A stretch of DNA of 64,000 nt from Geosiphon pyriformis uo1. Lineage: Eukaryota > Fungi > Glomeromycota. The DNA is taken from the NCBI GenBank assembly GCA_016748015.1, contig JAAOMT010000515.1, positions 293,249-357,248 of the forward strand, given 5' to 3'. Position numbers and translations under genes: made by a program. Below are positions 19,750-56,050 of this stretch, piece by piece. Below the pieces are notes generated by a model that ran no database searches, had not been told where the DNA came from, and worked only from the letters and a program-made list of their open reading frames with translations. Each line of letters begins with the position of its first letter. Position 1 is the stretch's first letter.

Positions 19750-22120
19750 AACTGTATTTATTTTGGATTTTAAATTACGATTTTTGTTGTTCAATAAAAA
19801 TATAATTTATGAGAAACCAACAAGATTACTTGTAAATTATATATCAACAAAATTTTAATTCTATAATTAATTATATTTTTGTTAGTTAAAAACCAATATT
19901 AATTATTTATTTTTAGTTTAACATGTAAAACAAAAATTATATTTGTGTTTTATCACTATTAAATTTTTTACAAAAAGTTTATGCAAAATATAAGAATTAC
20001 AAAAATAATCCAATGTCAAACTACACTTTTGAAAAAAACATGTAAAATATAGATAACTTAGTAATTTGAAAATAGTTAAAAAATTTTTGATTCTTTTTGA
20101 AAAGTTATAGAATTTGAATAAGATTGTGATTAATAAATTTTAATTGTTATTATTAAAAATATTTTTTATTATTTTAATGTTTTTACAATTCTAATTGTCA
20201 ATATAATAATATATCTATCTAATTAATATTTAATGTCAAATTATTGTCAAATTTTTTGTTTTATATATTGAAATTTTCTGATAACTCAAATTCTCTTTGT
20301 AGACAATTTTTTGCTATTGAAAATGTTCGTAGGTACAACTGTTTATTTCTTAATAATTTTGTAAAAAAACTATTATTAATATTTGATTTAATCTTGTCAA
20401 AAAATATTATTAAGATTTAATTTTAATCTTGTAAAAGATATTTTTTTTTAAAACCAATTATTTGTTTTTTGTAATTGTTAATATAATTTTGACATAAACA
20501 ATAAAGCCAATACTAAATATTTTAATAACTTAATTTTTTTTAAAAGTGTTTTTTAGTCTAAAAATTCAAATAATGTTATTAATGTTAACAAAATTAACAA
20601 TTAATTAAATTTGCAATTACAAGATTTAATCAAAAAAAATCAATTTTAAAAGCGATTGTAAATATGATTTGGACCAAAAAATTTGACTTGACAAATTACA
20701 TTTATTTTTTTAATTATAACAAATTTTGAGATATTGTGAATTAAATAAACTAAATAATTAATAATTTAATAACAAAATTAAATATCAAATTAATAAATAA
20801 ATAGGCAATTTCTTTTTTTTAAAATTCAAACCAAAAATTAACAATGTAACAAATAAAATGCTTACTTTTACGGCTTTACAACAAATATTAATTTGTTTAA
20901 TGTAAAAATATGGTAACAATAATGTAATATAAATAATAAATATAATATAATATAGTCCAGATGGCTGGTCACTTGTTGAACCACATGACTCACGTCTATA
21001 TTTAATACAAGTAATATAACTAGAATAAATAGTGGGAGGACCACAATTTGTTAAAAAATAATAAATATAAAAAATTTGATAATTATTTTTAGTAAAATTA
21101 ATAAGTATTAACACACCTTTAACTTATTAGTACTTATTAAAAAAATAAAAATAAAAGTCTAAAAAATTGTTAATTTAATAATAAACTATTTTCTAAATAA
21201 AAACAATATTTATAAAAATTCATTTTTTAATCAATTAAGTCTTCAACAATATTAAAATAATTTTTAATAATTGACTCGTAAATAAAACATGATTTTAAAA
21301 TGATTGAAAACAATTTTATTAATTATTAATTTTAACAATATTAATAAAACTAATTATTGATCAATAAAATAAGAATTTATAAATACAATTACCAAAATTT
21401 CAGAGCAAACATATTTATAAATAATATAAACAATTATCTATCTGAGAAATATTCAAGATAAATTTAATATTATTAAATTATTACAAATATAATTCAAATA
21501 TTATACTAAAAATCAAACATCAAACATCCAATTATAATTATATATTATAATTTTACAAAAAAACTTATATCAGCAAATTTTTAAAGCCATGATCATTTTT
21601 CTCATATTAATTATTGTTAATAAAAATTAATGTATATTTAAAAAAAGTTATATAAATCTGTCAAAATTACTTTTTAATGTCTATTAATTTCAATGCGCAT
21701 AAAAAGTTATCATATTTTTCTCGTATATTTTTTTATAAAATTTTGTTCACCTATTATTAAAGAATATGTATGTGAGTTTTATTCAATTTGCTTAATTATT
21801 CTTTGAATAAAAATAAGAATTCCAAAACCAATTGTTTCATACTGTATATATATTTAAATGTTATAGATAAATTTTTTGCTTTTTATATTGTAAAAATAAT
21901 TTATGATTGATTTTTAAATACAATATTTTTATATATAATGAAAATAATAATTAAAAATTTTAAAGTATTTTTCTCATTAAATAATAACATTTAACTTTTT
22001 TGATTAATATAATTTATATATTATTTTATTTGTTTAGTATTTAATATTATGAATGATTTAATTAATGATATCTTAATAATTTAATATTATATTCGTAAAT
22101 ATAATTTTTCACAATTTCAT
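19750..22120. mobile_element. Extremely AT-rich, CpG-depleted block, probably an eroded transposon relic
   Basis: Sharp drop in G+C, very few CpG, no credible ORF. A faint SHDH..CQ pattern near 21590-21670 is reminiscent of an integrase zinc finger, but the family cannot be assigned. Confidence 0.4.
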
Positions 22121-23279: not shown

Positions 23280-25717
23280 ATGTTACCTCGAAAACCAGCA
23301 ACAAATATTGAATTCAACTCGCAAAAAAGTGAAAGTGGACCATTAATTATGATAAATGAACAATTCGCAAATTCCATGACCAAATTGGATACGATTAATT
23401 CGCATAAAGAAAATCTATTGCCTGGAATTCGAGCTAGAGAGGTAAAAATTACAAATTTTGTGAAGTCAATCAATTTTTAAAACTGGCATAAAAGGAAAAC
23501 AGATTGCGAATGAAATAAAATCTAAGGCAACTAAAAAAGATGAGATTCATGACAAGATTGTTGACCGCGCTGATTTTAATCATGAAAATCTACTGATAAA
23601 ATGCTCGAATATTGCCAGTTTACTTAACTTCTTCCTTTCTAATCTAGTTACTTGGACGTCATGCAAATAGACCTCAATCAATGATACAATTTAATTCTGA
23701 ACCAGCTCTCAAACTCAATACCAACTTGCCGGCCCGTTACAGTATGATAACACCAACAAAAAATACGGTCCATGTCTACAAAATCGACGTGAATCACAGT
23801 CACCAGGATAGTGAGCAAAAGGACAGACTTGGATTTGCAGGCAAATTAAAATTAATGTTAAACCCTCCACCGAATCTTGGAAAAAAACGTTATTCAGCAC
23901 CAGCAATTATTCGAGGCCCAAAAGCTTGGAATCCGGCACAAAAAAATGGTGAACTAGCGATGAAGGAAGAACAATATCTACAAGCTGCTCTTTGCTTTTC
24001 CAAAGTATTGGAACAATATCCGGATAGTGTTAATGCATATTGTGATCGTGCTACGGCTTATATCCGGATGGGTGATTTTGATCGAGCGACGCAAGATTTG
24101 GATATTGCATTTCAACGAAAACCTAATAAGTCACGTTGTTGGTGTTTGCGGGGTGAACTTCATTATCACCAGGGTAAATATGACGAGGCATTGATTGATT
24201 TTTCTAACGGCTTACAACTCGATCCTGAAAATCTCGAGGCTTTGAACAGACGTGCTTTAATACTCAGTAAAATTGGATTCCATAGTAAGGCTGCTGAAGA
24301 ATTGGATAAAATTATTAGACTTCAACCCAAGAATCCTATTGCATTGCAACAACGTGGTATAGATCATTTTCTCACGAAAAATTTTATCGCTGCCGTACCA
24401 GATTTAACGAGATCATTGCTCTACGGGGTAGAGGATCAGAAGGCCACAACTCTCAGTTATCGAGCCGCGGCTTATAAAGCGATGGATCGATTCGTTGAAT
24501 CTTTACACGATTTTAATACTGTTTTGGAAATGGATCCGAATGATATTGAGGCGCTGAATCAACGTGCTGATCTTCATCGATTAATTCGAAACTTCAATAA
24601 AGCTATTAAGGATTTTACTCGTGTCTTAGAACTTGAGCCGTATAACGCTTTTGCACTCAAAAATCGAGGAGCCATGTATGCCCAATTACGTCAGTATGAC
24701 CGAGCCCTTGCAGATTTTAACAGACATTTAGAATTAGAACCTGATGACACTTTTTCGTTGGGTATACGTGGTGATGTTTATCGACTTATTGGACGATTTG
24801 AAGAAGCTTTGCCAGATTTAAATAAAGTCATTTCACTTGAAACGGACGATGCAGAAGCTGCATTAATGACTCGAGCTGCTGTTTATCGTAAAATGGATAG
24901 GTTTGAAGAAGCATTATCAGATCTAAATGCAATTCTCGATAATAATCCTGAAAATTCCCAAGCCTTAGCAATAAGAGGCGATATCCATTACTGGAAAAAA
25001 CTTTATTATGAAGCATTAATTGATCTGGATGAAGCACTCGAAATTAGGTCCACTGATCATAATGCATTACGCAGTCGAGGTGTAACAAATGCGGCGTTGC
25101 AAAGATATCACGAGGCCCTTTACGATTTTGAAAAATCATTGATGATTGATCCTGAAGATGCATGGACACTGACATTTAGAGCTGAAGTATATCATATTCT
25201 AGAAATGTACAATGAAGCTATCAATGATTTGGATCGTGCCATCCAAATAGCACCTAAGCAGTGGTTCCCCCTAGTCGTTCGTGGTAGTGTTTATCGTTCC
25301 ATGAAAAGGTATACTCGAGCATTATCTGATCTGGATGTTGCTTTAAAATACACACCGCAAGACCTGTTTGGACAGCGATACCAAACACAGGCATACGCTA
25401 ATCGTGGAGCGGTTTCTCGAATTTTGGGTCGCTTCGATCGAGCGTTACATGATTTAAATCTTGCTTTATCTCGTGAACCGCAAAATATCTTTGTTATCAG
25501 TCAACGTGGAGCTTTATTTCGTGCTTTGGGAAGATATGATGATGCTAACAAAGATTTGGAGAAAGCATTAAGCTACGATCCCAATAATCAATTTGCGTTG
25601 TCAGAACGAGCAAAGGTTAATCGCATCATTGCTACAAATAAACTTCTTGTCCAATTCAACAAGCAGTTGAGCGTTACTATCGATGCAGCGGCTAGTTTTG
25701 AGGGAACCATTGTATGA
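23280..25717 (+). CDS. TPR-repeat protein A (about 16-17 TPRs), 2 exons
   Basis: The 678-aa ORF 23681-25717 is made of 34-aa TPR units (A...RG..Y..L..Y..AL.D...AL...P). The frame is open upstream to an acceptor at 23647, and a phase-0 donor GAG|GTAAAA lies at 23442 in the upstream ORF. The exact start ATG is uncertain (23280 or a later in-frame ATG). Confidence 0.9.
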
Positions 25718-26797: not shown

Positions 26798-29700
26798 TTA
26801 ATTTGTATTTTCTTGCCCGGATCCGTCTATTGAACTCTCTCCATCAGCAGCAAGATCCAGTTCGTCGGTCCGATCACTGCCACTTTTTCTTCGACTCGTT
26901 TGTAATCTTTCACCAATGGATCCCACAGACATATTTCCTCGAGAATTAGAAACCCGACTACTTGTACTACCACCACTTTCCAATGTTCTCAATGAATTTT
27001 CTCGTTCCCTCTTTCTTCTTTCAGCCGATATCGGTTCAGCATCAAAATATTGTGAGTTCTGTGATTCTCTATTTCTTCCGACAGAAGTAGGATCTTCGGT
27101 TTCATTGTCATCTTCATCTTCATCATCATCCGGATCAAAATCGTCATCGTCACTATAAATGGCGAGACCAGTGACAATCTGTTCACGACGGGGCTCAAAG
27201 TCTCTAGATGTGGGTGAGGCGTGATCCCTTCGATGAGGAAGCAATGTTCGGACAATATTCATTGCGCGTGATCCTTGCTGTTCAATTGGACTCGACTTAT
27301 TTCGTTTTATTACCCCAATTGTTTCTTCGCTATTGCCGGATGAAATTAGCGTTGTCGAATCTCGACTTGTATTAGTGACGACAATGGTGTCAAGTTCATC
27401 ATTATTACCTGCATCATCAAGGGAAAATGGAAGAGGCACTTCTTTGATAGCTCGGAATTGGCCGCAATTACTGATGTGCTGTAAAAAGTTTATGATCAAT
27501 GAATAAAAGCCATTAAATGAGGAAGATACAAATCCATCTTCGTCCCACTTACTTCGTTCTCAACGCGAAAAAAATTCCATTGCCAACGTCTGATAAAGCA
27601 TATAAAAATGAATCTTTGTTAAATAAATTATTCATCAAATAAAAATTACATGTTATGTGATAGCCGATTACTGACCGCAACATTTCCCCAAATGCAATCA
27701 TAAAAGCTAAAAGTGAGCTCGATATTGAGAGCTTCATAAGCTGGGTCGTCCAGCTAAATCTCAGAATAATGTTTGTAAACATCGCGAAATAATACACCCA
27801 TTTATTTTTAAAACCCAACTCGTCCCGAAGAAAAAGGTTATCACTATCAGATTGAAAGAGTGACCAATCCATGAGCAGGTCCCATAAAATTGTATAAACT
27901 GAATTAAAGGATTGAATGAATATCCACACACCAAGCCAATTATTATTGGTGCCGGAGATCGATTCTATTTGAAAAGAAAAGTAATTAGATTTGCTACAAT
28001 CAATTTGAAATGGCTGGGAAAACTCACTTGCTATTCGGTATCTTGATGCAAAAATTATAGCCAAAATAGAGGAAGAATATTTTCCTGCATTCAATAGGTG
28101 GGGATACGATTGGCCTGTATCTTTATAACGTCTTAAACATTGCAAGAATCGCCACCATGGGGGTAATGAAGCAATGATGGGCGTCCACCACCATAAACCT
28201 GAATTGCAAAAAGCTGTATTCAAGGCATAAAAATTAAAATGAGGTATAACGTTGAGAAAAAAATCCAATTTCAAGACTAACCTAATTCATTTTCATCCCA
28301 TTCACAATTATAAACACAACTGAATATTCCTATCGAGACAACAGAGTATGATAGGCTATTTAAAATATCAGCGACAAAAAAATCACGGAATTCCACGCGG
28401 AAAAAGAAGCTGAGAAATATTCGGAACTTTTCAATTTTTAAGATCAGGGAAAAGTAAGCATGAAAAACAATATTTTTAAAAACATATTTTGCTTTTCCTC
28501 ACTCAATTTACCAAAGCAACAATCAGCCAACGCCTCGCATCGTAATAGAATATCGGGAAAGGACAAAAAAACACCGCGAAGAAAATAATCACAAATAATG
28601 CAGGAAACCAAGTCGGTGGTAGAATAGCGGTTAAACGATCGCTAAAAGGCAAATATAAAGTGAAATTCAAGAGAAGAAATGCGATAGCTGGGAGCTTTAA
28701 AAGAAAGGTAAAAGGAAAAATAAGCTAAAATATTCATTCAAATATGCGAAAAATCGATAGGATCAAATACCTCAAAATATTGACGATAATCCAGATTTTC
28801 TCTCGGATCGAATTCAAAGATGAACTTATAATTAATTCTTGCTTTAGTCCAGGCAAGCATATTTAACCCGAATAGCAAGGAGAAAACAATCGGTAGAAGG
28901 AAACCACCATTTATTTCTAAAATGAAATGAGACACTGATTCCTTCAGCATGGACGGTTCCCCTGACGATAAAACTAGTAGGAGAATTTTCCAAGTGGAAT
29001 TGTGAATAATCAAAATGATTCAAGAAAATTTGAGGAAGGATAACTTAATGCAAACCATATTCGGCAACACGCGCCATTAAACTAAAGGATACCCCCAAGT
29101 ATAAACCAACCCGCCATACCGCGAAATGATAAGTCTGAAAATAAAAGAGATAATAGAATTTTACATTATGAAGAAATGTGCATTTTGGATAAAAATGTCA
29201 TCACAAAACTTGCCTGATTTTCATTACGAGGAACTCGGAGCTTATTCATAGCTTGTCTTCTCATTCCCCCTTCAAATTTGTCCACATAAAAATTCTGAAT
29301 ATAAAAATCAGCTGAATTAAATGTTGAATGGTTATCTCGTAAAAAATGGATGAGATATCTATGCAAATACCTCAGTCTCTTTAGTGATTTGATCAAGAAT
29401 TTTAGATGTTACAAAATTGCTAGCATCGATTTTCTGCATATAAATGTAGCCACCTTTCCAACCTGCAAGCTGATTTAAAATTCAAAATGTGAAAATATGA
29501 ACATTTTGAAATCTAAATTGGTGTAAAAAATTGCATACCTTATCAAATTTCTTGAGAATTTTCACAAAACCAAGCCGATTTAGAACCTATACAAAATTAT
29601 AGGAAAATTTAGTTGAAGTTGATTTTTGCAGACCGATTACTGAAATTTTGTTTTACCTTGTAATTTTTTAACAATTCAGCACCGCGATAGAATTCAAATA

Positions 29701-32038: not shown

Positions 32039-34166
32039 TCATTCAACAGTGTTTTCTTGGTTTTGGTTTCGACTAAGTAGAGCATATAGTTTTTGTCTTT
32101 CATAATAGGCTGACTGGTTTTGTGGATTCAATGTCAACACTTTATTCAGATCTTTAATTGCTTCATCGAATTTTCCTAGAGCGCTAAATAAGAAACCACG
32201 TTCAGCTAGCGCGAGTAAATTATCCTGCTCACAAGTTAAGGATGAATTAAAGTCGGCCAAAGCTTCATCAAACCGACCTAAATCTCGAAATATTATACCC
32301 CGTTGAGCGAATGCTTGAGCTTTATGTTGTTGGCCAAAACTGTCGTTTGGAGCTAGTCGCAAAGCAACATCCAAATCAGCTAAGGCTAGATTGTATTGTT
32401 TCATTACTCGATATACTTTGCCACGGATAGCATAAGGAAGCCATTGGTGCGGTGAGGTTTCTAAAGCAAAATTTAAATCCTTAATCGCTTCATCATACAT
32501 TTCAAGTTGATTGAAAGTTTCAGCGCGAAAAGCTAATGTCCATGAATCATTTGGTCCAATTTGAAGTGAACTTTGAAAATCATTCAAGGCATCCTGATAC
32601 CGACCCAAAGCCAAATTTGTGACACCTCTGGTTCGTAGCGTGTCATGATCACTTGGTGAAATCCTCAATGCCTCGTTAAGATCGTTTAAAGCTTGATTGT
32701 AACATTTCTTCCAATAATAAACATCACCTCGTATTGCAAGGGCATGAGCATCTTGAGGGGCCAACGCCAGAATCGCATTGAGATCATGTAATGCATCATC
32801 AAGGCGATTTAATTTACGGTAAACCATCGCACGGCTGATAAATACATCAATAGGATGGCGAGAATTAAGAGCTATAGCCTTGTTCAAATCGGGTAATGAG
32901 TCATTATAACGTCCCAATAATCGATATACGTCAGCACGGATAGTCAACGCAATGATGTCATTAGGGCAATTTACTAGAAATTTATCCAAATCAGACAGTG
33001 CTTTATCATATTGACGTAATTGGGTATATATAGCCCCACGGTTTTTGAGAGGATAAAGGTTTTTGGGGTCGATTTGTAAAGCTAGACTACAATCGTTTAT
33101 AGCTTCATTCAAATTTTTCATCAGCCGGTAAACATCTGCTCTTTTGTTAATTGCTTCAATATCGTTAGGGTTCATATCTAACGCTTTGTTCAAATCATGA
33201 ATTGATTCACTCAACCGGTTAAGCTGGATAAAAGCACTTGCTCGGGTTTTCAAGGCAGAAGCTTTTTGTTCTTCAAAACCATATAACAAAACTCTCGACA
33301 AATCAGGAACCGCCGCTTGATAATTTTTCGCCAGTAGATGAACCTCACCACGTTTTTGCAATGCTGAAACATTTTTCGGCTCTTTGAGAATTACTTTATC
33401 TAAGTCAGAGATAGCCATATCGTAACGTCCTGCACTCTTCAAAATCATCGCGCGTTTGATCAAAGCTTCAATATTTTCTGGTTCAAGATTCAATGCATTA
33501 TTATACTCAATCAAGGCCTCGTCATCTCGTCCTTCGCAATGATGCACTTCACCACGTAAAATCCAACAACGAGCCTTAGTTGGTTTTTGAACAAATGCAA
33601 CATCCAAATCTTCTATTGCTCTTTTATATTCGCCCAATTTGATGAGAGCCTGGGCACGATCACATAACGCACTAATACTATCTGGATATTGTTCTAAAAC
33701 TTTGGTAAAACATTCTACAGCTAGTAAATATTGTTTTTGTTTCATGGCTTGTTGCCCATTTTTTTGGTATTGATTCCATGCTTTAGGCCCTCGCAAAAGT
33801 TTCGGAACAGCTGCATTTTTTTCGCAACGCGGACTTGTCACGGAGCTCAAATTCAAATTATTTATTTCAACATTATTCAAAATTTCGTGATTACTATGTT
33901 GACTTTCATCAATCGGGTAGATAGGAAGAAATTTTTGTGAGGGTGGTATAGATACACTAAGTCTTGACGTCTTAAATTCTAAGGGATCGCTTGTTAAGGG
34001 TGCTGAAGAGAGTGGTGATGCCGCTACTTGTGTGCTTTCTCTTCGCTATTATTTCAAATAAAAATATTTAATGTCTAGGGAAACTACAAGTCTTTAACAT
34101 AAATTATTGGTATATATTTACCTCCCGTCTCTTATTATCCCTGGAAGAACGCTCTAACATCACCAT
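32039..34166 (-). CDS. TPR-repeat protein B, paralog of A, 2 exons (about 683 aa)
   Basis: The 613-aa ORF extends in frame to an acceptor at 34046. Exon 1 at 34166-34122 reads MVMLERSSRDNKRRE, with a 76-nt GT-AG intron at 34121-34046. Collinear with A (RGPKAWN, LEQYPDS, AVPDL..LLYG, HALAIRGD.YYWKK). Confidence 0.92.
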
Positions 34167-36641: not shown

Positions 36642-37868
36642 TTTGATTAATAAAAAACACTTCGCAATCCTAGCGGATTATATAATAAATCAATGGCGCA
36701 AAATCTAAAAAGGGTCAATTGGTCTATTGGGATGAATTACTCACCGGAGCCTCGAAATTATTAGAAATCAAGCTCTTGTTGATTAGTCGAATTGGAGATC
36801 AAGTTAAATCGGAATTTCATTGAGCCGATGGATAATTCGAAGCTAACGACATTTTATTTAAAATGTCTGATTTCCTAATATACCTACCAAAATCGATGGA
36901 TATCAAGCACTTTAGAAATTTTTGGCCATTCGTCAGAGTATACCATTTCGCCAAGAAATGAAATTCGCAGGGACCGTGAGTTGTAACTTTTATCAAACGG
37001 TCCAAACTTTGAAGCTATAGTCAATATTTCGACTAGTCTCGAAAAAATTCGGCCTGTAGTACAAAGAAATTGGACTACTCCAACCGAGGAATTGTTGTAC
37101 TTGTTGGTTCTGATCAAAAAACATATGAAAATCACCGTAAAATTTACGCCAGAAGCATTTCCCTAGAATAAAGGAAGTTTTTAGGAAGATGCTGCCCTGT
37201 TCACGCAACTAATGTTGCAAAAGTGCCTCAACCGAAAAGAGCGCCAAAAGGTTACTTGGACAGTCTATAGCCTTGATTACAGCCAGAATTTGATTCGAGG
37301 CTTAAAGGAAATTTAGAAGCGTAGACCAAATCCCAGTAATTTCATCCATCTTGAAGAATATATTCAATATTGCGCCGCGTTAGCCCCCACTTCATCGAAG
37401 TATGCCCCAGCTAATTGAGACAGTCATCGCAGCTCATGGAAAAGCGACAAGATATTAAATTAACTCTTGCGGTTCTACAAAAAATGATAAAATACGAATT
37501 AATAATAAAAGTTATCTGTACAAAGAAATCTCAAGTAGAAACCATATTTTAATTTATTTTAACTTATCTGGGCTTACTTCTTTCGCATAATTAAATTCAG
37601 GTATAACCAATCTCAGCTAGGTTATTTGACAATTGTCTCGGACACATTATTATTTATGGCTTTACTGCTCGTTCAATTTGTTTAATCCCTTAAAATGCTA
37701 ATAATGGTGATCGCGATAATCTAAATAAAAGAGTGGCTCCGAAACTTTTTTTTTCCTTATATTTTTAAAATTTTTGTTTCAAACATCACACCTTTTCTGG
37801 AATTGCACCTCGATCAAACAGGATATTTATGAGGATAAGCTTTTGCTTCTTCCTTTTCAATTGTTTCA

Positions 37869-38390
37869 ATGCTTCTCACTGCTGCTTAGGCTTCCTCTAC
37901 ACTTGGTGTTTCTGTGTGCACTCTTCATCACTGACACTGGAAAGACAAAATCGTAATATTTCATTCACGAAGCTTTATAATATTTCAAACATCCTGAACT
38001 CACCGTCTCCTTTTCCTCTTTCCCCTCTTCCCCCTCCCTCGCCTTAACATGAGCTTGTCTCAGATGTTGGGAATTAAATCAACTTCAAGTGGGCTGCGTT
38101 GCGCTCCTTACTGGAATGTTTGTGCTGTAAACTGATCAAAGAGACAACATTTTTTTTATGGATCATATAAAACACAATTTACTTTTCTAGGGAGATCATT
38201 TTTGCTATTTTGCATTCAATCTTCTCACCTATGTCTTTCACCTCGATGGGACAAAAGTCGTGGTTCTCTCAACGGATGATGCCGTTTCCAGATGAGCAGG
38301 AAAGTATTGGCAGCTCAGACGAAAACAGCAACAAGAAGCCCAAATACACGAAGTTGCATTGTTGCAAAAATGGCTAGTAACAGATATGGT
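37869..38390 (+). pseudogene. tnpA: IS607-family TnpA relic (MerR-like HTH + serine recombinase)
   Basis: MLLTAA*ASSTLGVSVCTLHH*HWKDKI../KLYNISNIL (HTH, typical pattern AA..LGVS..TLRRW...GKI). HELVSDVGN*INFKWAALRSLLECLCCKLIKE (typical DIGSGINFKR.GL..LL). DHFCYFAFNLLTYVFHLDGTKVVVLS (typical DRLCRFAFELL..LF...G..IVVL). The catalytic YARVS segment appears deleted near 38045. Confidence 0.85.
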
Positions 38391-38399
38391 GACACAGTT

Positions 38400-39619
38400 G
38401 ATGAAGATGAGGTATACCCGAATGCAATTGATGAGGCAATGAATGGGCTGTTTACTGATATGATTGTGATTTTTTTAAAAAGATATCTTTTTTTTGGAAA
38501 CCTATTACTGATATCTCATTTTTCAATAAGATTGTTGCCAATTATCGGCAAACGAGACATCATATACAGGAATACTTTTTCTACAACCTTTTCAAGCATG
38601 AAATCAGGACACCTGGCGCTAGCACTTTATCGAAATATTTCCTTGAGAGGTTCTGGATCTTGCAATCACTGTAGCAATCCAAGCACAGAACAAGGTTGAT
38701 TAGCGAAACAAAAGCTTAGGAAAATAAACTAGATACCATGCCATTGCAACTAAGAAAAATCCTGTCCAAATGATTACAATTTGTGCATAGTACTGTTGGG
38801 TACCTCTTGGATTCTATCTGCAAAAATATGCACAATAAGGAACTTATTATTGATCCTGATCATTCATATTACAAGACAAAACTACCAATTCATCATGAAC
38901 ATTGGTGGTGGAACCATCACTCGCCCAATGATAAGGTGTAGATCGAGATGGACTCGACTTTTATTTGGGTATATGACAATAAGGTGGTATCAACCCATGA
39001 AGTACAAGCGAAGGGCCATTAATATTGGTGTTAAGACTTTTTAACATTGAAGATTTTCTTTTATCCTTCAAATTTAAATAATCTTTCAATTTATTATTAG
39101 ATTACAATATATATTTATACAAGGATATGGCTGCTTTGGAGAGAATGATATCCAGCATCTAATTTAGCTTTTTCTTGCTCTTGATAGTCTCATTTCATGT
39201 ACTTATCAGGTACTAACACGACGATTAAGAACGTTTTACCATTTACAAACGCGTATGCCCCAACGAGTAAAGATCTTATCAATGAGTGTATAAAAAGGTG
39301 ACACTATGGCTGTTAACAACATTTAATGTGATTATTATCTCACGATTTAATTCACATACAATGACAAGAAAGACAAAAAGGAAGCTAAATTGGTGCACGA
39401 TATGAAAGATGTTGACATGGAGTCATGAACAAGTTGCTCAACAAGGCAGAGAAGTTAGGAAAAAAGATGGTTATTGTGTCTGAGGCACACATGTCAAAAA
39501 CATGCAGCGGGTGTGGGTGGAGCAATCAGTATTTGGGTGTTCAGAAGATTTTTCAGTGCTGGGATTGTAAATTGATAATAAATAGACATGCCAATAGTGC
39601 CTGAGGGATCTTTTTATAA
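38400..39619 (+). pseudogene. tnpB: Fanzor2/TnpB RNA-guided nuclease relic (RuvC + C4 zinc ribbon)
   Basis: VYPNA/LMRQ*MGC; P*EVLDLAITVAIQA; KKNPVQMITI; RuvC-I AINIGVKTF (for IDPGVRTF); GENDIQHLI*LFLALDSLIS; KDLINEC/KKVTLWLLTTFNVIIISRFNSHTM..RKLN..KMLTWSH; LLNKAEKLGKKMVIVSEAHMSKTCSGCG..LGVQKIFQCWDCKLIINRHANSA*GIFL*. Confidence 0.9.
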
Positions 39620-39755
39620 GGTCTTCTCTTCCTTGAAGGGTTGACTGCTCAAGTCAATCTCAATGAAGGATGGAGCTGTACGCAAATGTACGGAGTGAAA
39701 ATTACTCCGGACCCATCCGAAGAATAGTTTTATCGTTCAGCTGATAAATTGATCA
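39620..39755 (+). ncRNA. Candidate omega-RNA scaffold plus flanking guide
   Basis: Stems directly 3' of the nuclease: GGTTGACT(39639-46)/AGTCAATC(39652-59), extended by CTTCCTTGA/TCAATGAAG; GGATGG(39668-73)/CCATCC(39713-18), enclosing CGGAGTGA(39691-98)/TTACTCCG(39702-09); and TCTTC/GAAGA. The position matches known TnpB/Fanzor omega-RNAs. Confidence 0.65.
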
Positions 39756-42652
39756 GGATTTTTTTAAAATATCGATGGGTTAGAGAGCGAATGTAGAAAT
39801 CAGAAATGATTAAGATACTCTTTGAAGGCTTAGAAATATATTTAAAGACTCTTAAGGTGGTAAGCTGATTCCAATTGCCAATTTGGGTCCGAAAATTATT
39901 TTTATTCATAGTGGTGCAAGAAATATAAAGGGATACTAGTCAACAAAAGCTTTGATCTGCTTTAAAACATTAGGATATCTCCATTTTTAGGCTTTTCCTC
40001 ATTCAAATACAAAATTTTTTGCCGCTTTGGAGGTTTTATACACAATTTATTCGCAAAGAATGAAAAAACAGCTGCAGCAGAACGATTCAAATATTGAGCT
40101 GCGCCAAATAAATCTATAAAAAAACATCAAGAATTCTTTGTAAAATAAATCAAAGATAACATTCAAACCTTTCTTGAATCAGTTGATACTTTGATAAAAA
40201 AAGTCACCTCTAATATACACGGGAAATTGCTTTATAATGTTCCCATTCTAAAACTATGAAATTTTCAAAGAATATTTTTCATCAATTGACCTTTTTTTCA
40301 GAGGAATATCTGCAAATTATTTACAATCATTATTATTGAAAAATGAAATTTTATGAAATATTTGATATATATATGTTGCACCCACTGAATTAGACTCAAG
40401 TTTAAAAGTAATATTTTTAAAATTTGAATTAAATTCAACCTTTCACTTTACTTTTTCCTTGGACTTTCAAAAAATTAGATCCCCTCCTGCGTAAATGTTC
40501 TTTCCAAATTTTTGAAATCGTATCAAAGTTCAGTTGTAACTGTCTTTCTTTTGATAAAAGTGTTTTATAAAAATCAAAGAATGCCCATACTTACGAAAAA
40601 TACACACTATTGAGGAAAAATATTCAATACCAAAAAAAACTTCCACCACTGAGAAAGTTCAAAATTCCTGTACACCGGATGAATTAATTCAATTGGGTAA
40701 TAATATATTTGCTTTTTAAAGTTTTTACTCCTTATTTGGTTTTGCGGCCCGGAAATGTGGGAGCTAATTCAAGAATTTAAAAGTATAAAAATTTTGTCCC
40801 ATAATTTAATATTTTTCATGTTTGTCCAATCTAATGTAAAGCATTTCTTTGGAATTTCCTAATTGTATCCTATTTCAGTAAAAAGGTTGGAAATTCTATA
40901 AAGAATAAAATAAAAGAGACTCCATGCAATTAGAATCAACCCTGCAGTATTATTTCAAAAATTTAAAGAATACTCTGAACATGAAGGTAATTTTATTATT
41001 GTAAAGAAAATTTAGAAAAAATCTACACTTTATTCGTCCAAGCCTGAACTTAAACAATTTTTGATATCTGTCTACAAATGAAAGGCAATGAAAAAACTTC
41101 TCACTCATGCTGTTTCTTATAATTTTATTGGAATTTATCCTCTAGACTATTTTTTGAGTTTCTGAAAATGGTCATTTATAATGACGGCTATGCACTTTAA
41201 CGTTTTGCAGTTTCAAAGCATGTTAAGACCTTTTTTGGTAAGACGATTGTAACATAACCTTCAAGAAAACGTATTGCATAACCAAATTTTGGAATAAAGT
41301 GTCTGAAAATACTTTATAATTTTAATAGAATTTCAAAACTCTTATTTCAAGCTCGATTTGTTCTTATTTTAGATCACCTGAATCTTTGAACCAAAGCATT
41401 GACGATTCTAGATTTAAGAAAGGCTTTAAATAAGAAATCTTTCAAAAATGACTTAAATATGACTATAATAAATTCCTAAAAAGAAACTAAAAATCGACCA
41501 AGTTTGAATAAATCTCACATTTATTGAGCCAATCAATGTATAGGGAGCGGGAGTGTGACATCTTTTCGAATAGGATAACAGACAATGTGTTTAAAAAAAT
41601 GAAAAAGGAATTTCAAAATTTTTTTTCATTCTTTTAAAAATAAATTTCATTCTTCTAATCAAAACTGCAGTCCTGTCATTATTAAATTCTTGAGGATATC
41701 TCACCTTAGGAAAAATTTACATGAGAAATGAAAAACATATCATTTTATTTTAATAAGAATTCGAAATGATGTAGTTTAAGATATTTATGTTGTTAGCGAG
41801 AACCATTAATTTCAAATTCAATTAAAAGCTGAAAAATTTAAAACCATTTCTACCCTGGTTTAATCTAGTTATCATTTCAGAGATCGGAAAATGATAGAAT
41901 TTTTGGCAGCTGGCCAAGATTATTCTTTTTAAGGAATTTCAAAAAATGGATTTACTTTTTCAAAGATCGTCCAATTCCGTAAATAGCTAAAAGTGCCAAG
42001 CACACATACACAAACTAAAAAATTTCTGCTGTGTGGGCATTTCAAAGACATGTTGTGATAATTAAGTGTTTATTTGTTTGACCGGTGTAGCATTTTCAGA
42101 CTCCTCATTTGTAAGTCCCATCAAAAAATATTTTTGCCCCTAAATTCACAAAGTTGACCCCCGAAATTTTGATTAGTTACACAAAGTAAATTGTGTCTCC
42201 TGATATCACTGGTCATAACTAGCAATCATCAAAAAGTATATTAAATAAACATATAATATAACCTGTTCTATTCAACAAAAGGCGTAAATTTGGCTTTTCT
42301 AAACGTTGTTGGGGAATAACTTTTTAATGAGGTTAAAATTTTCTCCCAATAAAAAAAAAGAAAACAGCAAAAAGTTAGCAAGCAAACCACTTTTAAAAAC
42401 TTTCTTCTTCTTGAACTTTATCAAAGCTGACAAATTACTATTTCTCCAATAATATTCAAGTAGTAAATCAAAAAAAAGTTCATATACTAAAATAGAAATT
42501 TATCAAATAGCCCTTGAATACAAGTAAAAATTTGAACATAAAATTTAAATAATCTTATAAATATGCTGAACTTTTACCTCAGCTGTCCAAATATCCAAAT
42601 TCCAAAAATCTTTTCTTCAACTTCACCAAGATTTTCAAGAAAAACAAATTCA

Positions 42653-46974: not shown

Positions 46975-49107
46975 ATGTTAGATGTACTTTTCATCCTTCC
47001 TATGATTTCATTAATAAAATTCATTCTGACTTTGATAGTAATTTCAACCAACGCCGAATATATACTTCCAATTATTAGACCAAAATTTTCCACAACGCCC
47101 CATATTCATGACTGGACATTTAATATTGCAGAAACATCCGTTTCTCTTGATGGGGAGGTCAAAAACATATCTACAGTTAATGGAAAATACCCCGGCCCTA
47201 CAATAGCAGCATTTAAAAATGATTGGGTTCGAGTCAGAGTAAAGAATCTTCTTTCAACAGATGAAAAAATTGCCATACATTGGCATGGAATTTTGTTGAA
47301 ATCTACCCCATGGTTTGATGGTGTCCCTGACATTTCACAATGTGGAATACCGAGAAATAAAGAGTTGTTGTATGATTTTAAGGCTCTGAATCCTGGAACG
47401 TATTGGTGGTATGCTTAATTGTGAATGCTTTCTTTTTGCGAAGAGCGATTCGATCAGGATATTTTCTCATAAAAATATTATTGATTCAGGCATTCCACTT
47501 CTAAAGGCTCATCTTTCGAAGGTTTAGTCGGACCAATTATAATTCATGATCCTAAAGATCCTCATTCAAGGGAATACGATGAAGAATTTATTATTATGCT
47601 TTCGGATTGGTTTCATGAAATATCAAATAGTCCAGAAAGTAAAAATGTAAGATTTTTTTCTCATAATCTGCCTTCTAATTACATGATACAGAACTTGCTA
47701 GTCACATCTCTTAAACGCTAGTTATACCCGACAGCTGGGCTAATTAATGGTAAAAATGGAATTGATTGTGCACATTCCAAATGTGATTCGAATTCTAGTT
47801 TTGCGAAATTCAAGTTTGAACAAGGAAAAAGATATCGCTTACGCATAATTAATTCCAGGTAAAACTATGTCTATTTTGTATATGTATAATTATTTTGGGG
47901 TTTATCATGAGATTATACGTTCGTTACTCACTAAATTCCATGATTTATATAAAGTGCACAGTCATTTTTCAAGTTTTCAATAGATGATCATATATTAGAT
48001 TTGATTGAAATTGAGGGCTTCCCTCTCATTTCAAATCATTTTCGAATTATTCCACTTGCTCCTGGACAAAGAGTATCAGTAATTCTCAAAGCCATAAAAC
48101 CAATCAGAAATTATTGGATGAGAGCTAATATTGATTCGAGCTGCTATTTTAGAAATCCTGGAAAAACAAAATTGAATCCAAATGTCAACGCAATTATTCA
48201 TTATGATGGCGCTGAAGAAGATGTGAAGCCTACGACCAAATCTTGGACAGACGATCTTGAAGCATGCGTTGACTTGGATCTGGAGAAATTGAGTCCTTTG
48301 CATTGGAGACCTGCTCCACCGCGTTTTGATCAACAATTTAATTTTGACTTGAAGATTGAGGTCGATAAACTGGGGAAACCTTTAAGAGGGTATTTCGGGA
48401 AACAGTCTAATGAGGTTGATACAGAATATCCAACTATTTCCAAGGTTTTTGATGGGTATACGATGTCTGATTTGAAGGCTACTTCTAAGGATCTGTACTT
48501 TTACGATAAATTTTGGGAAACTATTGAAGTTTTAATATCAAGTAAGTATTTTTTAAATTTTAGAAATAACCTTTTAATTGTTAAAAAGATTTCCATACCG
48601 AAACTTCCCGAAACCTTTTCATTGAATTAGATCCAAAGAGTGAATTTGGAGCTAGCGTTATTCATTTGGTTGGTTTTGAAACTTTCTTTGGAAAATGTAT
48701 TCGAAAACTCATTTTGATAGTCTAGTTATTTCATTCAATCCACAGCATGGCCACAATTTTTGGGTCATAGCCAGAAATATAGGGAATTATACAGCAAACA
48801 ATGTAACATTAAACACAAAGACACCCATCATGCGTGACACTGTCGTAGTTCCAAATGGTGGGTATGTTGTTCTGCGTTTTCGTGCAGATAATCCAGGCGT
48901 ATGGCAATTTTGTTCACGTACGTATTTTCCAATTAAATTTTCAGCATTTCGATCACTAAATAAAATTCTATTACTTATTTTATCATCTTAAAAGAAATTC
49001 AATGGCAGCTTGCACTTGGAATGTCAGTTCAGTTTGTTGAATTACCCAGCAGAATGAAGAAACTCTATTTTCCGCAAAAAATCAGGGATTTATGCTTTGA
49101 GTTCTAA
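46975..49107 (+). CDS. Secreted multicopper-oxidase (laccase/Fet3-fold) protein with degenerate copper sites
   Basis: Signal peptide; [83 protein letters not shown]|[39 protein letters not shown]. About 7 exons; stop at 49105-49107. Confidence 0.92.
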
Positions 49108-52639: not shown

Positions 52640-55600
52640 ACATGTGTTTTTGTATTTTTTTATCTTGTTTATGTTGTATTTTCCATAATAAATATTGATA
52701 ATTAAGTTATTTTGTTATTTGTAAAACTGGTATACTTTAAAACAAAAAAAATATATAATATTACTGATGACTTAGTAATTAGATAAAATTTTTTTTATTA
52801 TAATCTGTCAATTTATCTGTTTTTCATAATAACAACAGCTTTTTTAATAAAAATAACAATTATCAAAGAAGAAAGTTTTGTTTAGAAAAAATAACTTTTT
52901 TATATTTTATTTTATTCACATTTTAATAATTATTATCCAAAAAATAGTTATATTTAGATTTATAAAAAACAATTACCTTAAAATTATCATATTATTATTT
53001 TTTTTAACTAATTAAATGGTCTTAATAATGCTTGGCAAAGCTGTTTCTTTAACAAATCTAAAAAGTAATTACAATAAAATTATTCAAAATTGAAAATAAG
53101 TGCATTTTATTTTATGTATAATACCAGATTTTGGCAAATAGTTTAGAATTTTTTTGATAAGTTTTTACTTACTTTAGAAAAATAGTAAATAATAATAATG
53201 CTATTTTTTTGTATTATTTATTTTGTAAAATTTGTTAAAAATTTTTCTGATAAAAATAATAATAATATTTTTTTTACAATAATTGTTATCTATTTTGTTA
53301 ACATAATTAATAGAGTTATATTTTAATAATTATAATGTTAAATATTAACATATTAAGTTTTTTTTGGCTTAATATTATCAAAAACTGCAAAACTATATTA
53401 TTAAAATAGAAAATAAAAAATTATTAAAGTGTTCATTTAAGAATTTTTAATTTATTATTGTAATTAATTATAAAATTTCTAACTTAAAACTGTTAAATAT
53501 TGTAAAAAAAACAATAAAAAAAAATATTGTTTAAATAAAAATATTTTTAATAAAATAAATATATAAAAGTAATTTAGATATCTAATATTATTATAATTAT
53601 TTTAATATAAATAAACAAAATAAAATAAATCTAAAAACCAAAATTATATGTTTACAATAAAATAAAAATATAAAAAGCTGAATAAATAATATTAAATTTA
53701 TAGTTTTAAAACAAATATATAAAAGTTAATTAATATTTATGATAAATTAAAAAATGATAATAACTTGAAACCAAATTACAAAAGCTTTATTCAAGTTTAT
53801 ATTAGCATAAAAAATAATAAAAAATAGGTTTTGATAATTAAAACTATTATAAACACATTCTTTATAGTTTTTAAAAAAATACATACATGAATAGTAAGTT
53901 TATTTTGTTTTGTAGCTTTATATAAATATATAAATATTTAATATAATAAAATTTTAATTTTGTTAAAAGCTTTTATTACTTTTTATTATTGATTTGTATA
54001 ATAAAAATTATTTAAACAATTTATATATAATATGTTTTTAATATATTATATATAACTTTTTTTAAATAAAACTATAATTAATCTTAAATAATTGGGGATT
54101 AACAAAAAAGCAATAAATTAAAATTTTAATTAAATACAAAGAGTCTAACTATAATTAAATTTAAAATATGATATATAACTTGTATATATTATGAAATTAT
54201 AGCTTTAATTTATAATTGAAATTCTTGTTTGCAGCTTAATTGGAAGACCAAAAAAATATAAATCTAACAATTTTATAAAAAACACTTAAAGCTATAAATA
54301 TTAATGCATGTTAAAAATAAAGTTATTAAATAAATTAAAATTGTATATATTGCAAAAAAGAGTTAGGTTGTTTAATATTATTTAGAAAAAATAAGAAATA
54401 ATCTGTAATTGTATTAATTACACTGAAAAAAAAATTTTAGTCAAAAAACTATGTAATTATTTGTAAAATATTTATAAAATATGATTGTATTAAAACAAAA
54501 TATTATTTAACCATTTCTATACAATTTATAATTAATAATAAACAAAAAATTTTGAAAATTGAAATCAATTAAATTTTTGTGTACAAGTATGTTTTCTATA
54601 GTATTTTTTATTTAATCTTAATTTGAGCTTTATATTTTATTATTTTGCTAACTTAAAAAGCAAAGAAAAATTATACTATATTTAACATAATAATAATAAT
54701 TAAAATATTTGCAGATTATTATCCTCAAGATGATTTGATTAATTGAAAAAAAAATAGGCTTAATAAAAAAATTAGTTATATATTTATTAACTTTATGTAA
54801 AATAAAAAATTTATTTTTAACAGATATAAATTTATTTTTAATTATAAATTGTAAACAGCCAAACTAATTATGTGTTTTAGTTGTTAAATTAAATTAGTTA
54901 ACACAATTTGTTTTGTTAAAATTTAAAACAAAAAGCTAGTAAATTAAATAATAAATAACAATATGTAAATTTCATATTGTTTTTAAATCAAATAATAAAT
55001 TATAATATTAATATATAATTTTTTTACTATAAAAGATATACTATAAAACTAATTGAACCAAAAAATTATACTATTAGTATAAATAAAAATAAGATAATAA
55101 TATATAATAATGAGAATAGTAATTGCATAACAATAAAAATATTCAAACATAAAAGCAAATAAATAAGTAAATAATTTAATTAATATATTTTGTTTTATAA
55201 AACTATAATTGTTAATTTTTTAAAAAATTTGAAAGTTGAAAAATAATACAGTAATTATAATTCAATTTTTTTATTAATGCATTTAAAATTCAATTAAAAA
55301 AATAGTGATTTTATTTTAAAATATTTAAATTAAATTGTTAATATTTAATTAGTTAAATACTTTTTTATAAATCAAAATTTTTACTTATATATTTTAAAAT
55401 AAAAATAACCAAGTTAATTAAGATATAATTAAGATAATTAAAAAAAAATTGAATTATAATAATATTAAATAAAAAATATTGTTATAATAATAATTAAAAA
55501 TTTTTGTAAGTTTTAAAGAAAAAATATTTTACATATGTTAAAATACAATAATATTTGTAAACTATAATATTAATTTACTTTAAAAAATACTTATAAAACA

Positions 55601-56050
55601 GCTTATAATTTAAATTTATAAAGAAAAAAAAGCAAAAAACCTATTAAAAATATACAAAAATTATTTAAGCAAAGCCAAAAAACTATTAAATAAAATACAA
55701 TTTTTTATTATTAATATTATAATTTAAAACACATAGTGTTTTTTATTTTAATTAATAGATAAACAAACTATATTATTTTAATTTATACAAAATAAAATAG
55801 TGTATAAAAAATTAATTATAACTTTAATAATATTATTTACTTATATTTAACTATTTACAATTATTATAAAAGCAATTAACTATATTTTATGATTTAAAAC
55901 AAAGCTTAACAATACAACTAAAATAGTCTTTTAATATTTGATATTATTTGTAATATAAAAGTTTGAAATTTTTTTTTCTTGGCTTTAATTTTAGTATTGT
56001 AAAAGCTTAAAAAATTACTTATGAGTCTTTTTATAAAATGCCCATGACAC
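52640..56050. mobile_element. Extremely AT-rich, CpG-depleted block, probably an eroded transposon relic
   Basis: About 3.4 kb with essentially no CpG and no ORF of 60 aa or more. TG..CA-like edges at 52636 and 56049, but no target-site duplication or LTR pair seen. Confidence 0.45.

Follow-up and report, generated by a model that had tools for sequence, protein, structure and literature searches.

A very probable fossil IS607-type transposon with a Fanzor2 nuclease gene in the nuclear genome of Geosiphon pyriformis

Within a 64-kb stretch of the genome of the fungus Geosiphon pyriformis (hereafter 'the window'; positions are counted along it), a 1.76-kb section of the + strand, 37869–39625, carries the remnant of a transposase (TnpA) followed by that of a TnpB/Fanzor-type nuclease. 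Together these form the core of what is very probably a fossil IS607-type DNA transposon with a Fanzor2 gene (37.87–39.63 kb), lodged in the nuclear genome of its host. At the DNA level, similarity to other copies of the element extends slightly further, spanning at least 37818 to 39667 (blastn), and the surrounding sequence, at ~35 % GC, is of uniform composition across the site. In the three + strand frames of 37600–39900 the longest open frame amounts to 135 codons; an open reading frame (ORF) of 135 aa at 38292–38699 was rejected as a chance frame running over the TnpA/Fanzor junction, a PDB search with it coming back empty. The motifs by which a first-pass annotation recognised the element are real and go well beyond chance, and all can be read on the + strand in a three-frame translation of the same section: AINIGVKTF, MLTWSH, the zinc-ribbon string SEAHMSKTCSGCGW (= VIVSEAHMSKTCSGCGW; about 39470–39520) and the RuvC-III string CWDCKLIINRHANSA*GI (= FQCWDCKLIINRHANSA*GI; 39557–39613). 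Its starting point of 37742 gives way to 37869, where recognisable TnpA begins.

Two relatives with intact genes help in reading these remains. One, L054, is a public 2.25-kb contig on which an intact element occupies positions 124 to 2188 (2.06 kb): a 248-aa TnpA with MerR and Resolvase domains and then, after 85 bp, a 410-aa nuclease, P0026. The other, L045 (GCA_009772115.1, WNFU01053947.1; 3,088 bp), encodes an intact TnpA of 194 aa and, after it, a Fanzor in exon-like pieces whose zinc-ribbon region is interrupted by AT-rich gaps. Compared exon by exon, these pieces match the window in order; judged by its sequence, L045 may be an intron-bearing, possibly live relative.

Reading the nuclease remnant back from its 3′ end, a 59-aa piece (39425–39601) matches the TNB zinc-ribbon family of Pfam (PF07282) with an E-value of 2e-11 and 44 bits against a cut-off of 26, and finds its best PDB match in 9b0l, the mimivirus TnpB-like protein L79 (E 7e-5). 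This was the sole scoring piece when ten separate stop-free pieces were submitted to Pfam, and a PDB search with the RuvC-I piece returned nothing. A family profile built from twelve full-length relatives (A2) aligns to three collinear blocks of the window (39123–39278, 39286–39432 and 39428–39625; Table 1), and finds nothing on the reverse strand of this region. The three blocks occupy three reading frames and contain four stops, with the middle block shifted in frame with respect to both of its neighbours. Individual copies bear out the same blocks: a piece of L045 is 52 % identical to the middle block over 48 aa (tblastn, E 7e-16), a block that loci L003 and L001 match too; L045 also matches 39123–39278 (tblastn, E 7e-3); and the zinc-ribbon block is matched by 23 other loci. 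In all, the nuclease remnant extends over ~1.1 kb (~375 codons), as compared with the 410 aa of P0026. The claim that a RuvC/zinc-ribbon TnpB lies here thus stands, on the zinc-ribbon match, the collinear profile blocks and the alignment to P0026.

That alignment, made residue by residue from RuvC-I to RuvC-III (hmmalign, with X placed at breaks), reveals the state of the active site. AIDPGVRTF of P0026 corresponds to AINIGVKTF in the window, such that the DPG of RuvC-I reads NIG; MLTWSH (39409–39426) is identical in both; VSEAYTSKTCxxCG is paired with VSEAHMSKTCSGCG, and IDRDVNGA with INRHANSA. The alternative glutamate of RuvC-II is retained, six residues before the first CxxC (S-E-AHMSKT-CSGC), as is the C4 zinc finger between RuvC-II and RuvC-III (CSGC-x14-CWDC). 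At RuvC-III (CWDC-KLIINR-H), the position of the catalytic aspartate—part of the 'RD' of Bao & Jurka 2013—aligns and is taken by histidine, DRD reading NRH; the signature overall is E-x6-CxxC-x14-CxxC-x6-(D>H). From the alignment to P0026, the glutamate and four zinc cysteines have therefore been kept and the first and third RuvC carboxylates lost, exactly the pair of substitutions (D>N and D>H) previously proposed. The change from Asp to His is an inactivating one, in what is now a pseudogene. Because P0026 and 14 of 40 sister copies in the same genome read DPG, the nuclease lineage possessed this motif and the window copy has lost it.

The TnpA remnant called for a profile closer to hand, since genome scans with Pfam Resolvase and with the NCBIfam IS607 model had passed over this part of the window, the former not listing and the latter not flagging it. 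L020, a sister copy, supplied its best open TnpA frame (120 aa) as a query, which retrieves intact proteins of 188–206 aa with MerR plus Resolvase domains, 57–69 % identical, and ten such public proteins, none from the Geosiphon genome, were made into a TnpA profile. When the 64-kb window, cut into its 3,536 stop-free frame pieces from both strands, was searched with this profile, the sole significant match was 38191–38292 (E 1e-6; profile positions 128–158), with a collinear piece, 38078–38167, ranking third. Separate stop-free pieces are too short for Pfam, and profile scans were therefore also run through the breaks, with X placed at stops; the TnpA profile then aligns to three collinear blocks, 37869–37973 (profile positions 1–35), 38042–38143 (88–121) and 38191–38289 (127–158). 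The first of these, a MerR-type helix-turn-helix (HTH), is 55 % identical to the TnpA of L045 over 33 aa (tblastn, E 8e-5) and 69 % identical to L045 and L046 in DNA (blastn). The second is 47 % identical to the TnpA of L045 over 32 aa (tblastn, joint E 6e-10) and is also matched by L022, whilst the third resembles TnpA remnants of L025, L022 and L021.

Intact relatives continue from the HTH through a T/S-rich linker to KxYxYARVSSxKQKxDLxRQ. In the window, ~23 P/S-rich codons separate the HTH from profile position 88, and ~29 residues, YARVSS among them, are absent; the C-terminus (positions 159–195) is missing also. The architecture of an IS607 TnpA is thus still recognisable—HTH plus two blocks of the catalytic domain, in order—and the segment with the nucleophilic serine is gone. 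The MerR-HTH/serine-recombinase assignment put forward in the first-pass annotation is borne out by the profile match at E 1e-6, the three collinear blocks and the tblastn matches to L045. Its deletion of the catalytic-serine segment holds too, profile positions 36–87 having no counterpart in any frame.

Table 1. Parts of the fossil element and its margins (positions in the window).
Feature	Position	Strand	Evidence
Candidate left-end region, boundary not defined	37818..37868	+	blastn to L013, 78-88 % identity, from 37818
TnpA N-terminal MerR-type HTH remnant (MLLTAAxASSTLGVSVCTLHHxHWKDKIVIFHS), 2 in-frame stops	37869..37973	+	profile positions 1-35, 9.1 bits
P/S-rich linker remnant, ~23 codons; YARVSS block lost here	37974..38041	+	profile positions 36-87 unmatched in every frame
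TnpA serine-recombinase catalytic-domain remnant (HELVSDVGNxINFKWAALRSLLE…), 2 in-frame stops	38042..38143	+	profile positions 88-121, 15.2 bits
TnpA catalytic-domain remnant DHFCYFAFNLLTYVFHLDGTKVVVLSTDD, frame differs from preceding block	38191..38289	+	public TnpA profile E 1e-6
Fanzor N-terminal (WED/REC-side) remnant (…FPxEVLDLAITVAIQAQNKV…), weak	38605..38781	+	family profile positions 113-171, independent E-value (iE) 0.12
Probable Fanzor remnant upstream of RuvC-I (…PIHHEH…FIWVYD)	38828..38977	+	collinearity only; tblastn L045 exon piece E 0.55
RuvC-I motif AINIGVKTF, Asp to Asn	39015..39041	+	hmmalign beneath P0026 AIDPGVRTF
Helical segment after RuvC-I (GYGCFGENDIQHLIxLFLALDSLIS…), 1 stop	39123..39278	+	family profile positions 262-314, iE 2.4e-4
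Segment leading to RuvC-II (…FNVIIISRFN…KMLTWSH), 1 stop	39286..39432	+	family profile positions 318-366, 37.7 bits, iE 5e-13
RuvC-II alternative glutamate (SEAHMSKT-CSGC), zinc ribbon, RuvC-III (INRHANSA), 2 stops	39428..39625	+	family profile positions 369-434, 79 bits, iE 1e-25
Non-coding tail still resembling another copy	39626..39667	+	blastn to L012, 68 % over 39312-39667, ends 39667

The window copy belongs to a sizeable family. Scans of the genome (128.3 Mb in 792 contigs) find at least 68 TNB, at least 63 IS607-TnpA and at least 71 TnpB places, and a fragment covering the TnpA/Fanzor junction matches 82 places; the copies are spread singly over many large contigs. At least 16 other places hold TnpA followed by TnpB on the same strand, 0.8–1.6 kb apart, and the window TnpA remnant, ~1.35 kb upstream of its zinc ribbon and on the same strand, falls within this usual spacing. 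In DNA comparisons the window copy stands effectively alone (a single 68 % match of 356 bp and another of 56 bp), from which it follows that the family is old and diverged, and that the ends, target-site duplication and age of the element are beyond the reach of copy alignment. At least two nuclease subfamilies are present, one of the 'SEAYTSKTCSQCGWIN…NIDRDVNGARGIFLRALL' type (L001, L003, L004 and the window) and one of the 'IIQNEVYTSKTCxxCGNIQRIG…DRDENGAQG' type (L006, L007, L016 and L044).

A census of 40 other copies, taken from the at least 68 places and scanned with both profiles, gives a consistent picture of decay. DPG persists in 14, the glutamate in 35 and the last aspartate in 25 of the 40, with the full set of catalytic and zinc residues in three. 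Copies covering more than 300 profile columns each have 7–25 in-frame stops, and the four that are stop-free each cover 105 columns or fewer; a TnpA remnant accompanies 21 of the 40, the serine column still reading S in just one. The least-decayed sister, L214 (G000:C701:384926-388523, - strand), aligns over 394 of 443 profile columns in one frame and keeps DPG, E, CCCC and D, yet has nine in-frame stops, located inside conserved blocks as well as in intron-like insertions; no TnpA remnant was found within 2.7 kb upstream of it, and it is annotated, in part, as the hypothetical protein KAG9307454.1. None of the 40 is intact, which leaves the suggestion that intact copies might exist elsewhere in this genome without support. 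The family in this genome is old; its copies, roughly a hundred, are dispersed and have diverged from one another, and every examined one is broken.

Beyond Geosiphon, relatives are plentiful. An alignment of seven rows (A1), comprising the 59-aa window piece and stop-free pieces of sister copies, was searched against 1.84 billion representative sequences and returned 12,870 matches at E≤1e-3; the full DPG … E-x6-CxxC … CxxC … D pattern is found in 96 of the best 150, and relatives carry PF12323 (HTH_OrfB_IS605) in addition to PF07282. They include at least 433 on viral contigs, largely of giant viruses, where TnpA adjoins the nuclease in 47 of the 78 examined, and at least 452 in prokaryotes, mainly filamentous cyanobacteria. 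Taking viral and prokaryotic relatives together, an IS607-type TnpA lies in the 3-kb flanks of 108 of 156, and directly upstream in 84. Close relatives of P0026 and of TnpA that bear a species name belong to the chytrid Borealophlyctis nickersoniae and to Cetraspora pellucida. In a FastTree phylogeny of 159 rows, from which labelled Fanzor1 sequences were absent, the window groups with the Geosiphon loci L001, L003 and L004 (support 86), and P0026 joins this group next (support 85).

To which class of nuclease does the remnant belong? Fanzor2 was defined by Bao & Jurka 2013, with linkage to an IS607 TnpA as the original criterion, and Yoon et al. 2023 describe a DPG and alternative-glutamate pattern that sets Fanzors and cyanobacterial 'pro-Fanzors' apart from ordinary TnpB. 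A PDB search with the A2 profile puts the mimivirus Fanzor2 9b0l first, matched along the full length (E 1e-66), followed at a distance by an AI-designed TnpB-like nuclease (5e-28) and by ISDra2 TnpB (1.6e-19); up to E≤10 the list contains no Fanzor1 chain. Short and long relatives searched singly return the same ranking, likewise free of Fanzor1 chains, intact ones matching 9b0l with E-values of 1e-23 and 3e-19. The Fanzor2/IS607 label holds because the Fanzor signature is present, P0026, the closest intact relative, sits directly after an intact TnpA, and the family profile matches the mimivirus Fanzor2. Together with the HTH_OrfB_IS605 plus TNB layout and the TnpA-flanked relatives, these sequence features support Fanzor2, and the assignment made in the first-pass annotation stands on the TnpA linkage, the alternative glutamate and the match to 9b0l. 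That the nuclease might instead be a Fanzor1 or an IS200/IS605-type TnpB, and the recombinase-like strings upstream unrelated to it, could be argued from the commonness of Fanzor1 in early-diverging fungi and from the long relatives (over 600 aa) that sit near the window in the part of the tree that does not resolve. Yet those long relatives add an N-terminal extension to the TnpB-like HTH_OrfB_IS605 plus TNB layout, and their best PDB match is the Fanzor2 structure; the TnpA remnant is significant, on the same strand as the nuclease and at the distance usual for the family; and the geometry of the alternative glutamate excludes, under the definition of Yoon et al. 2023, an ordinary IS605 TnpB. 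We give this alternative hardly any credence. Rows for Gigaspora and Naegleria in the accessible part of the tree table of Saito et al. 2023 were also tried for placement and set aside; being chimeric fragments in odd positions, they left that table unable to settle any placement.

Geosiphon harbours Nostoc, and the element could in principle be bacterial: an IS607 with a 'pro-Fanzor' TnpB, present as a contaminant or recently transferred from this cyanobacterial partner, and the name Fanzor2 would then be wrong for it. Prokaryotic relatives are indeed numerous, mostly cyanobacterial and up to 49–52 % identical; Yoon et al. 2023 trace Fanzor2 back to cyanobacterial pro-Fanzors, and eukaryotic IS607 is closest to that of cyanobacteria (Gilbert & Cordaux 2013). 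The copy nevertheless sits within a 64-kb stretch of low GC, among fungal-type genes split into exons, and is one of about a hundred decayed copies over many large contigs. Its nearest relatives are other Geosiphon copies and then P0026; the named close relatives are from a chytrid and from other Glomeromycota, and L045 is exon-split. In the tree the prokaryotic rows cluster apart from the window clade (five changes for 29 rows), and Nostoc does not occur among the best 80 prokaryotic loci. As the tree shows no link specific to cyanobacteria and Nostoc is missing from those loci, transfer from the cyanobiont goes unsupported, and we consider a bacterial origin of the copy highly improbable. 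A giant virus is the other conceivable carrier, the copy having then arrived inside an integrated viral genome (an endogenous viral element) and not by transposition within the fungus. The many giant-virus relatives adjoining TnpA would suit such an origin, as would the enrichment of Fanzor2 in giant viruses (Jiang et al. 2023) and a 1.5-Mb viral region known from another glomeromycete; against this, composition is uniform across the site, copies are dispersed singly over many contigs, and no viral hallmark was seen among the ORFs scanned. Since the flanks hold ordinary cellular genes, contamination and a giant-virus island are both disfavoured, and arrival of this copy inside a viral genome is very unlikely; a viral vector for the family's original entry into fungi stays conceivable.

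Several observations weigh against the reading of this locus as a fossil IS607/Fanzor2 element. Similarity in the N-terminal half of the nuclease is weak: an exon piece of L045 is 53 % identical to 38623–38718 over 32 aa (tblastn, E 8e-4), and other matches have E-values of 0.12 to 0.55, that of 38828–38977 (E 0.55) being non-significant alone, if fitting in order and strand. The NCBIfam IS607 model is silent on the window TnpA, as noted above. Fanzor1 has been set aside by TnpA linkage, size and PDB ranking and not by a labelled tree, and in the tree we do have, support beyond the P0026 node is nil (15), with deeper nodes failing to resolve. Finally, the ends of the element, its target site and a guide RNA are not identifiable in a single diverged copy; an Rfam scan of 37000–40500 gave zero matches, and a search for sequencing runs of the source sample turned up DNA runs and none of RNA.

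The live element very probably had two genes on one strand, tnpA first. Its transposase, of ~195–250 aa, combined a MerR-like HTH at the N-terminus with the catalytic domain of a serine recombinase and would move the element as double-stranded DNA; the Fanzor2 gene, ~85 bp downstream, encoded a TnpB-like nuclease of ~400 aa, in which a WED/REC part and an HTH were joined by a split RuvC domain and a C4 zinc ribbon. By analogy with characterised Fanzor2 and TnpB, a guide RNA transcribed at the 3′ end of the element would be bound by Fanzor2, which would then cut DNA beside a short motif, and the tail at 39626–39667 is where the scaffold of such a guide (omega) RNA would be expected. The present analysis itself shows the homology, the gene order, the states of the motifs, the decay, the family of copies and the host; RNA guidance, mode of transposition and position of the guide RNA are borrowed here from the literature on relatives. 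The profile-matched blocks of the window contain at least seven in-frame stops, and each gene remnant at least two frameshifts; with the carboxylates and serine block lost as well, the earlier description of the copy as dead is apt. On its sequence, it would work as neither transposase nor nuclease: serine-recombinase transposition and RNA-guided cleavage no longer operate in this copy.

The flanks of the element hold two TPR genes, an EXS-family gene, an F-box gene, a multicopper oxidase and an α/β-hydrolase. The TPR genes are intron-free ORFs of 678 and 613 aa (23681–25717, + strand, and 32039–33880, - strand), with TPR repeats making up nearly their whole length (TPR_1, E about 1e-86 for each); ~6 kb apart and opposite in orientation, they look like a paralogous pair. 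An exon-sized ORF at 27549–28274 (- strand) represents an intron-split gene of the EXS family (SPX/EXS-type), and at 46975–48630 (+ strand) the Cu-oxidase_3 and Cu-oxidase domains of the multicopper oxidase occupy separate exon-sized ORFs. Three sections (53001–56000, 20001–22000 and 1–1000) have a GC content of 11–17 %, as compared with about 30–38 % elsewhere; such extremely AT-rich tracts could be decayed repeats or intergenic deserts.

Among known systems, the mimivirus IS607/Fanzor2 element (L79, 9b0l; 'ApmFNuc' of Jiang et al. 2023) provides the closest structural parallel, being the best solved-structure match for the window piece, for intact relatives and for the family profile. It has the same layout, with TnpA upstream of the nuclease, and shares with the Geosiphon family DPG, the alternative-glutamate RuvC arrangement and the C4 zinc ribbon. 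In the virus the copies are intact and active (Jiang et al. 2023), whereas that of the window, lodged in a fungal chromosome, is a pseudogene that aligns directly to L79 in part only, and intron-like gaps split some relatives in the fungal family (L045), unlike the mimivirus element. The cyanobacterial pro-Fanzor IS607 TnpBs (Yoon et al. 2023) likewise share DPG, the alternative glutamate and linkage to an IS607 TnpA, and are 45–52 % identical to intact relatives of the window family over the RuvC/zinc-ribbon half; they are, however, prokaryotic, intact and apart from the window clade in the tree. Fanzor1 proteins (e.g. SpuFz1 of Spizellomyces punctatus) are also eukaryotic, TnpB-derived RNA-guided nucleases with DPG and the alternative glutamate, but are larger, with extra insertions (Yoon et al. 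2023), and reside in Mariner, Helitron, MuDR, Sola and IS4-type elements, never beside an IS607 TnpA (Bao & Jurka 2013).

The first-pass annotation described Fanzor2 as best known from protists, giant viruses and molluscs, and well-known fungal Fanzors as mostly Fanzor1; by the literature, Fanzor2 is not unusual in fungi. Bao & Jurka 2013 reported Fanzor2 in four yeasts; the survey of Gilbert & Cordaux 2013 yielded 80 IS607-like sequences from 14 eukaryotes, Ascomycetes and Basidiomycetes among them; and in the words of Saito et al. 2023, 'Fz2 is found broadly in fungi', the accessible part of their table having rows for Gigaspora margarita and Ambispora gerdemannii. A G. margarita fragment in that part shares a IDPGIRTGWAWYS…KGCGWFGNLDINR string with L045. 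A total of 3,655 Fanzors has been catalogued (Jiang et al. 2023). The reported fungal sequences are thus of the same kind of element, and from the same kingdom, as the window copy, which differs from them in host lineage, Geosiphon being of the order Archaeosporales. Numbers differ too, with at least 63–82 places in this one genome, about half of the copies keeping recognisable TnpA remnants, against the 80 sequences from 14 species of Gilbert & Cordaux 2013. Our literature search found no paper on an IS607 or Fanzor family in Glomeromycota. The type of element, then, is already described in fungi; a Geosiphon lineage and its copy numbers are what is added.

Taken alone this locus matters very little, being a dead transposon. 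Its wider interest is that Glomeromycota hold many IS607/Fanzor2 fossils which standard annotation leaves as fragments of 'hypothetical protein' (e.g. KAG9307454.1), and that intact two-gene relatives in public metagenome contigs offer testable, compact RNA-guided nucleases. An active copy might survive in a related fungus, and L054 and L045 may derive from such fungi. For the published picture of how Fanzor2 has spread, the present data supply a further host lineage and copy numbers and leave the picture itself unchanged. A larger idea, which we put forward as speculative and rather unlikely, is that G. pyriformis, and perhaps Glomeromycota generally, experienced an unusually large, now extinct burst of TnpA-bearing IS607/Fanzor2 elements; if true, this family would be the richest eukaryotic record of a serine-recombinase insertion sequence with an RNA-guided nuclease invading a genome, gaining introns and dying.

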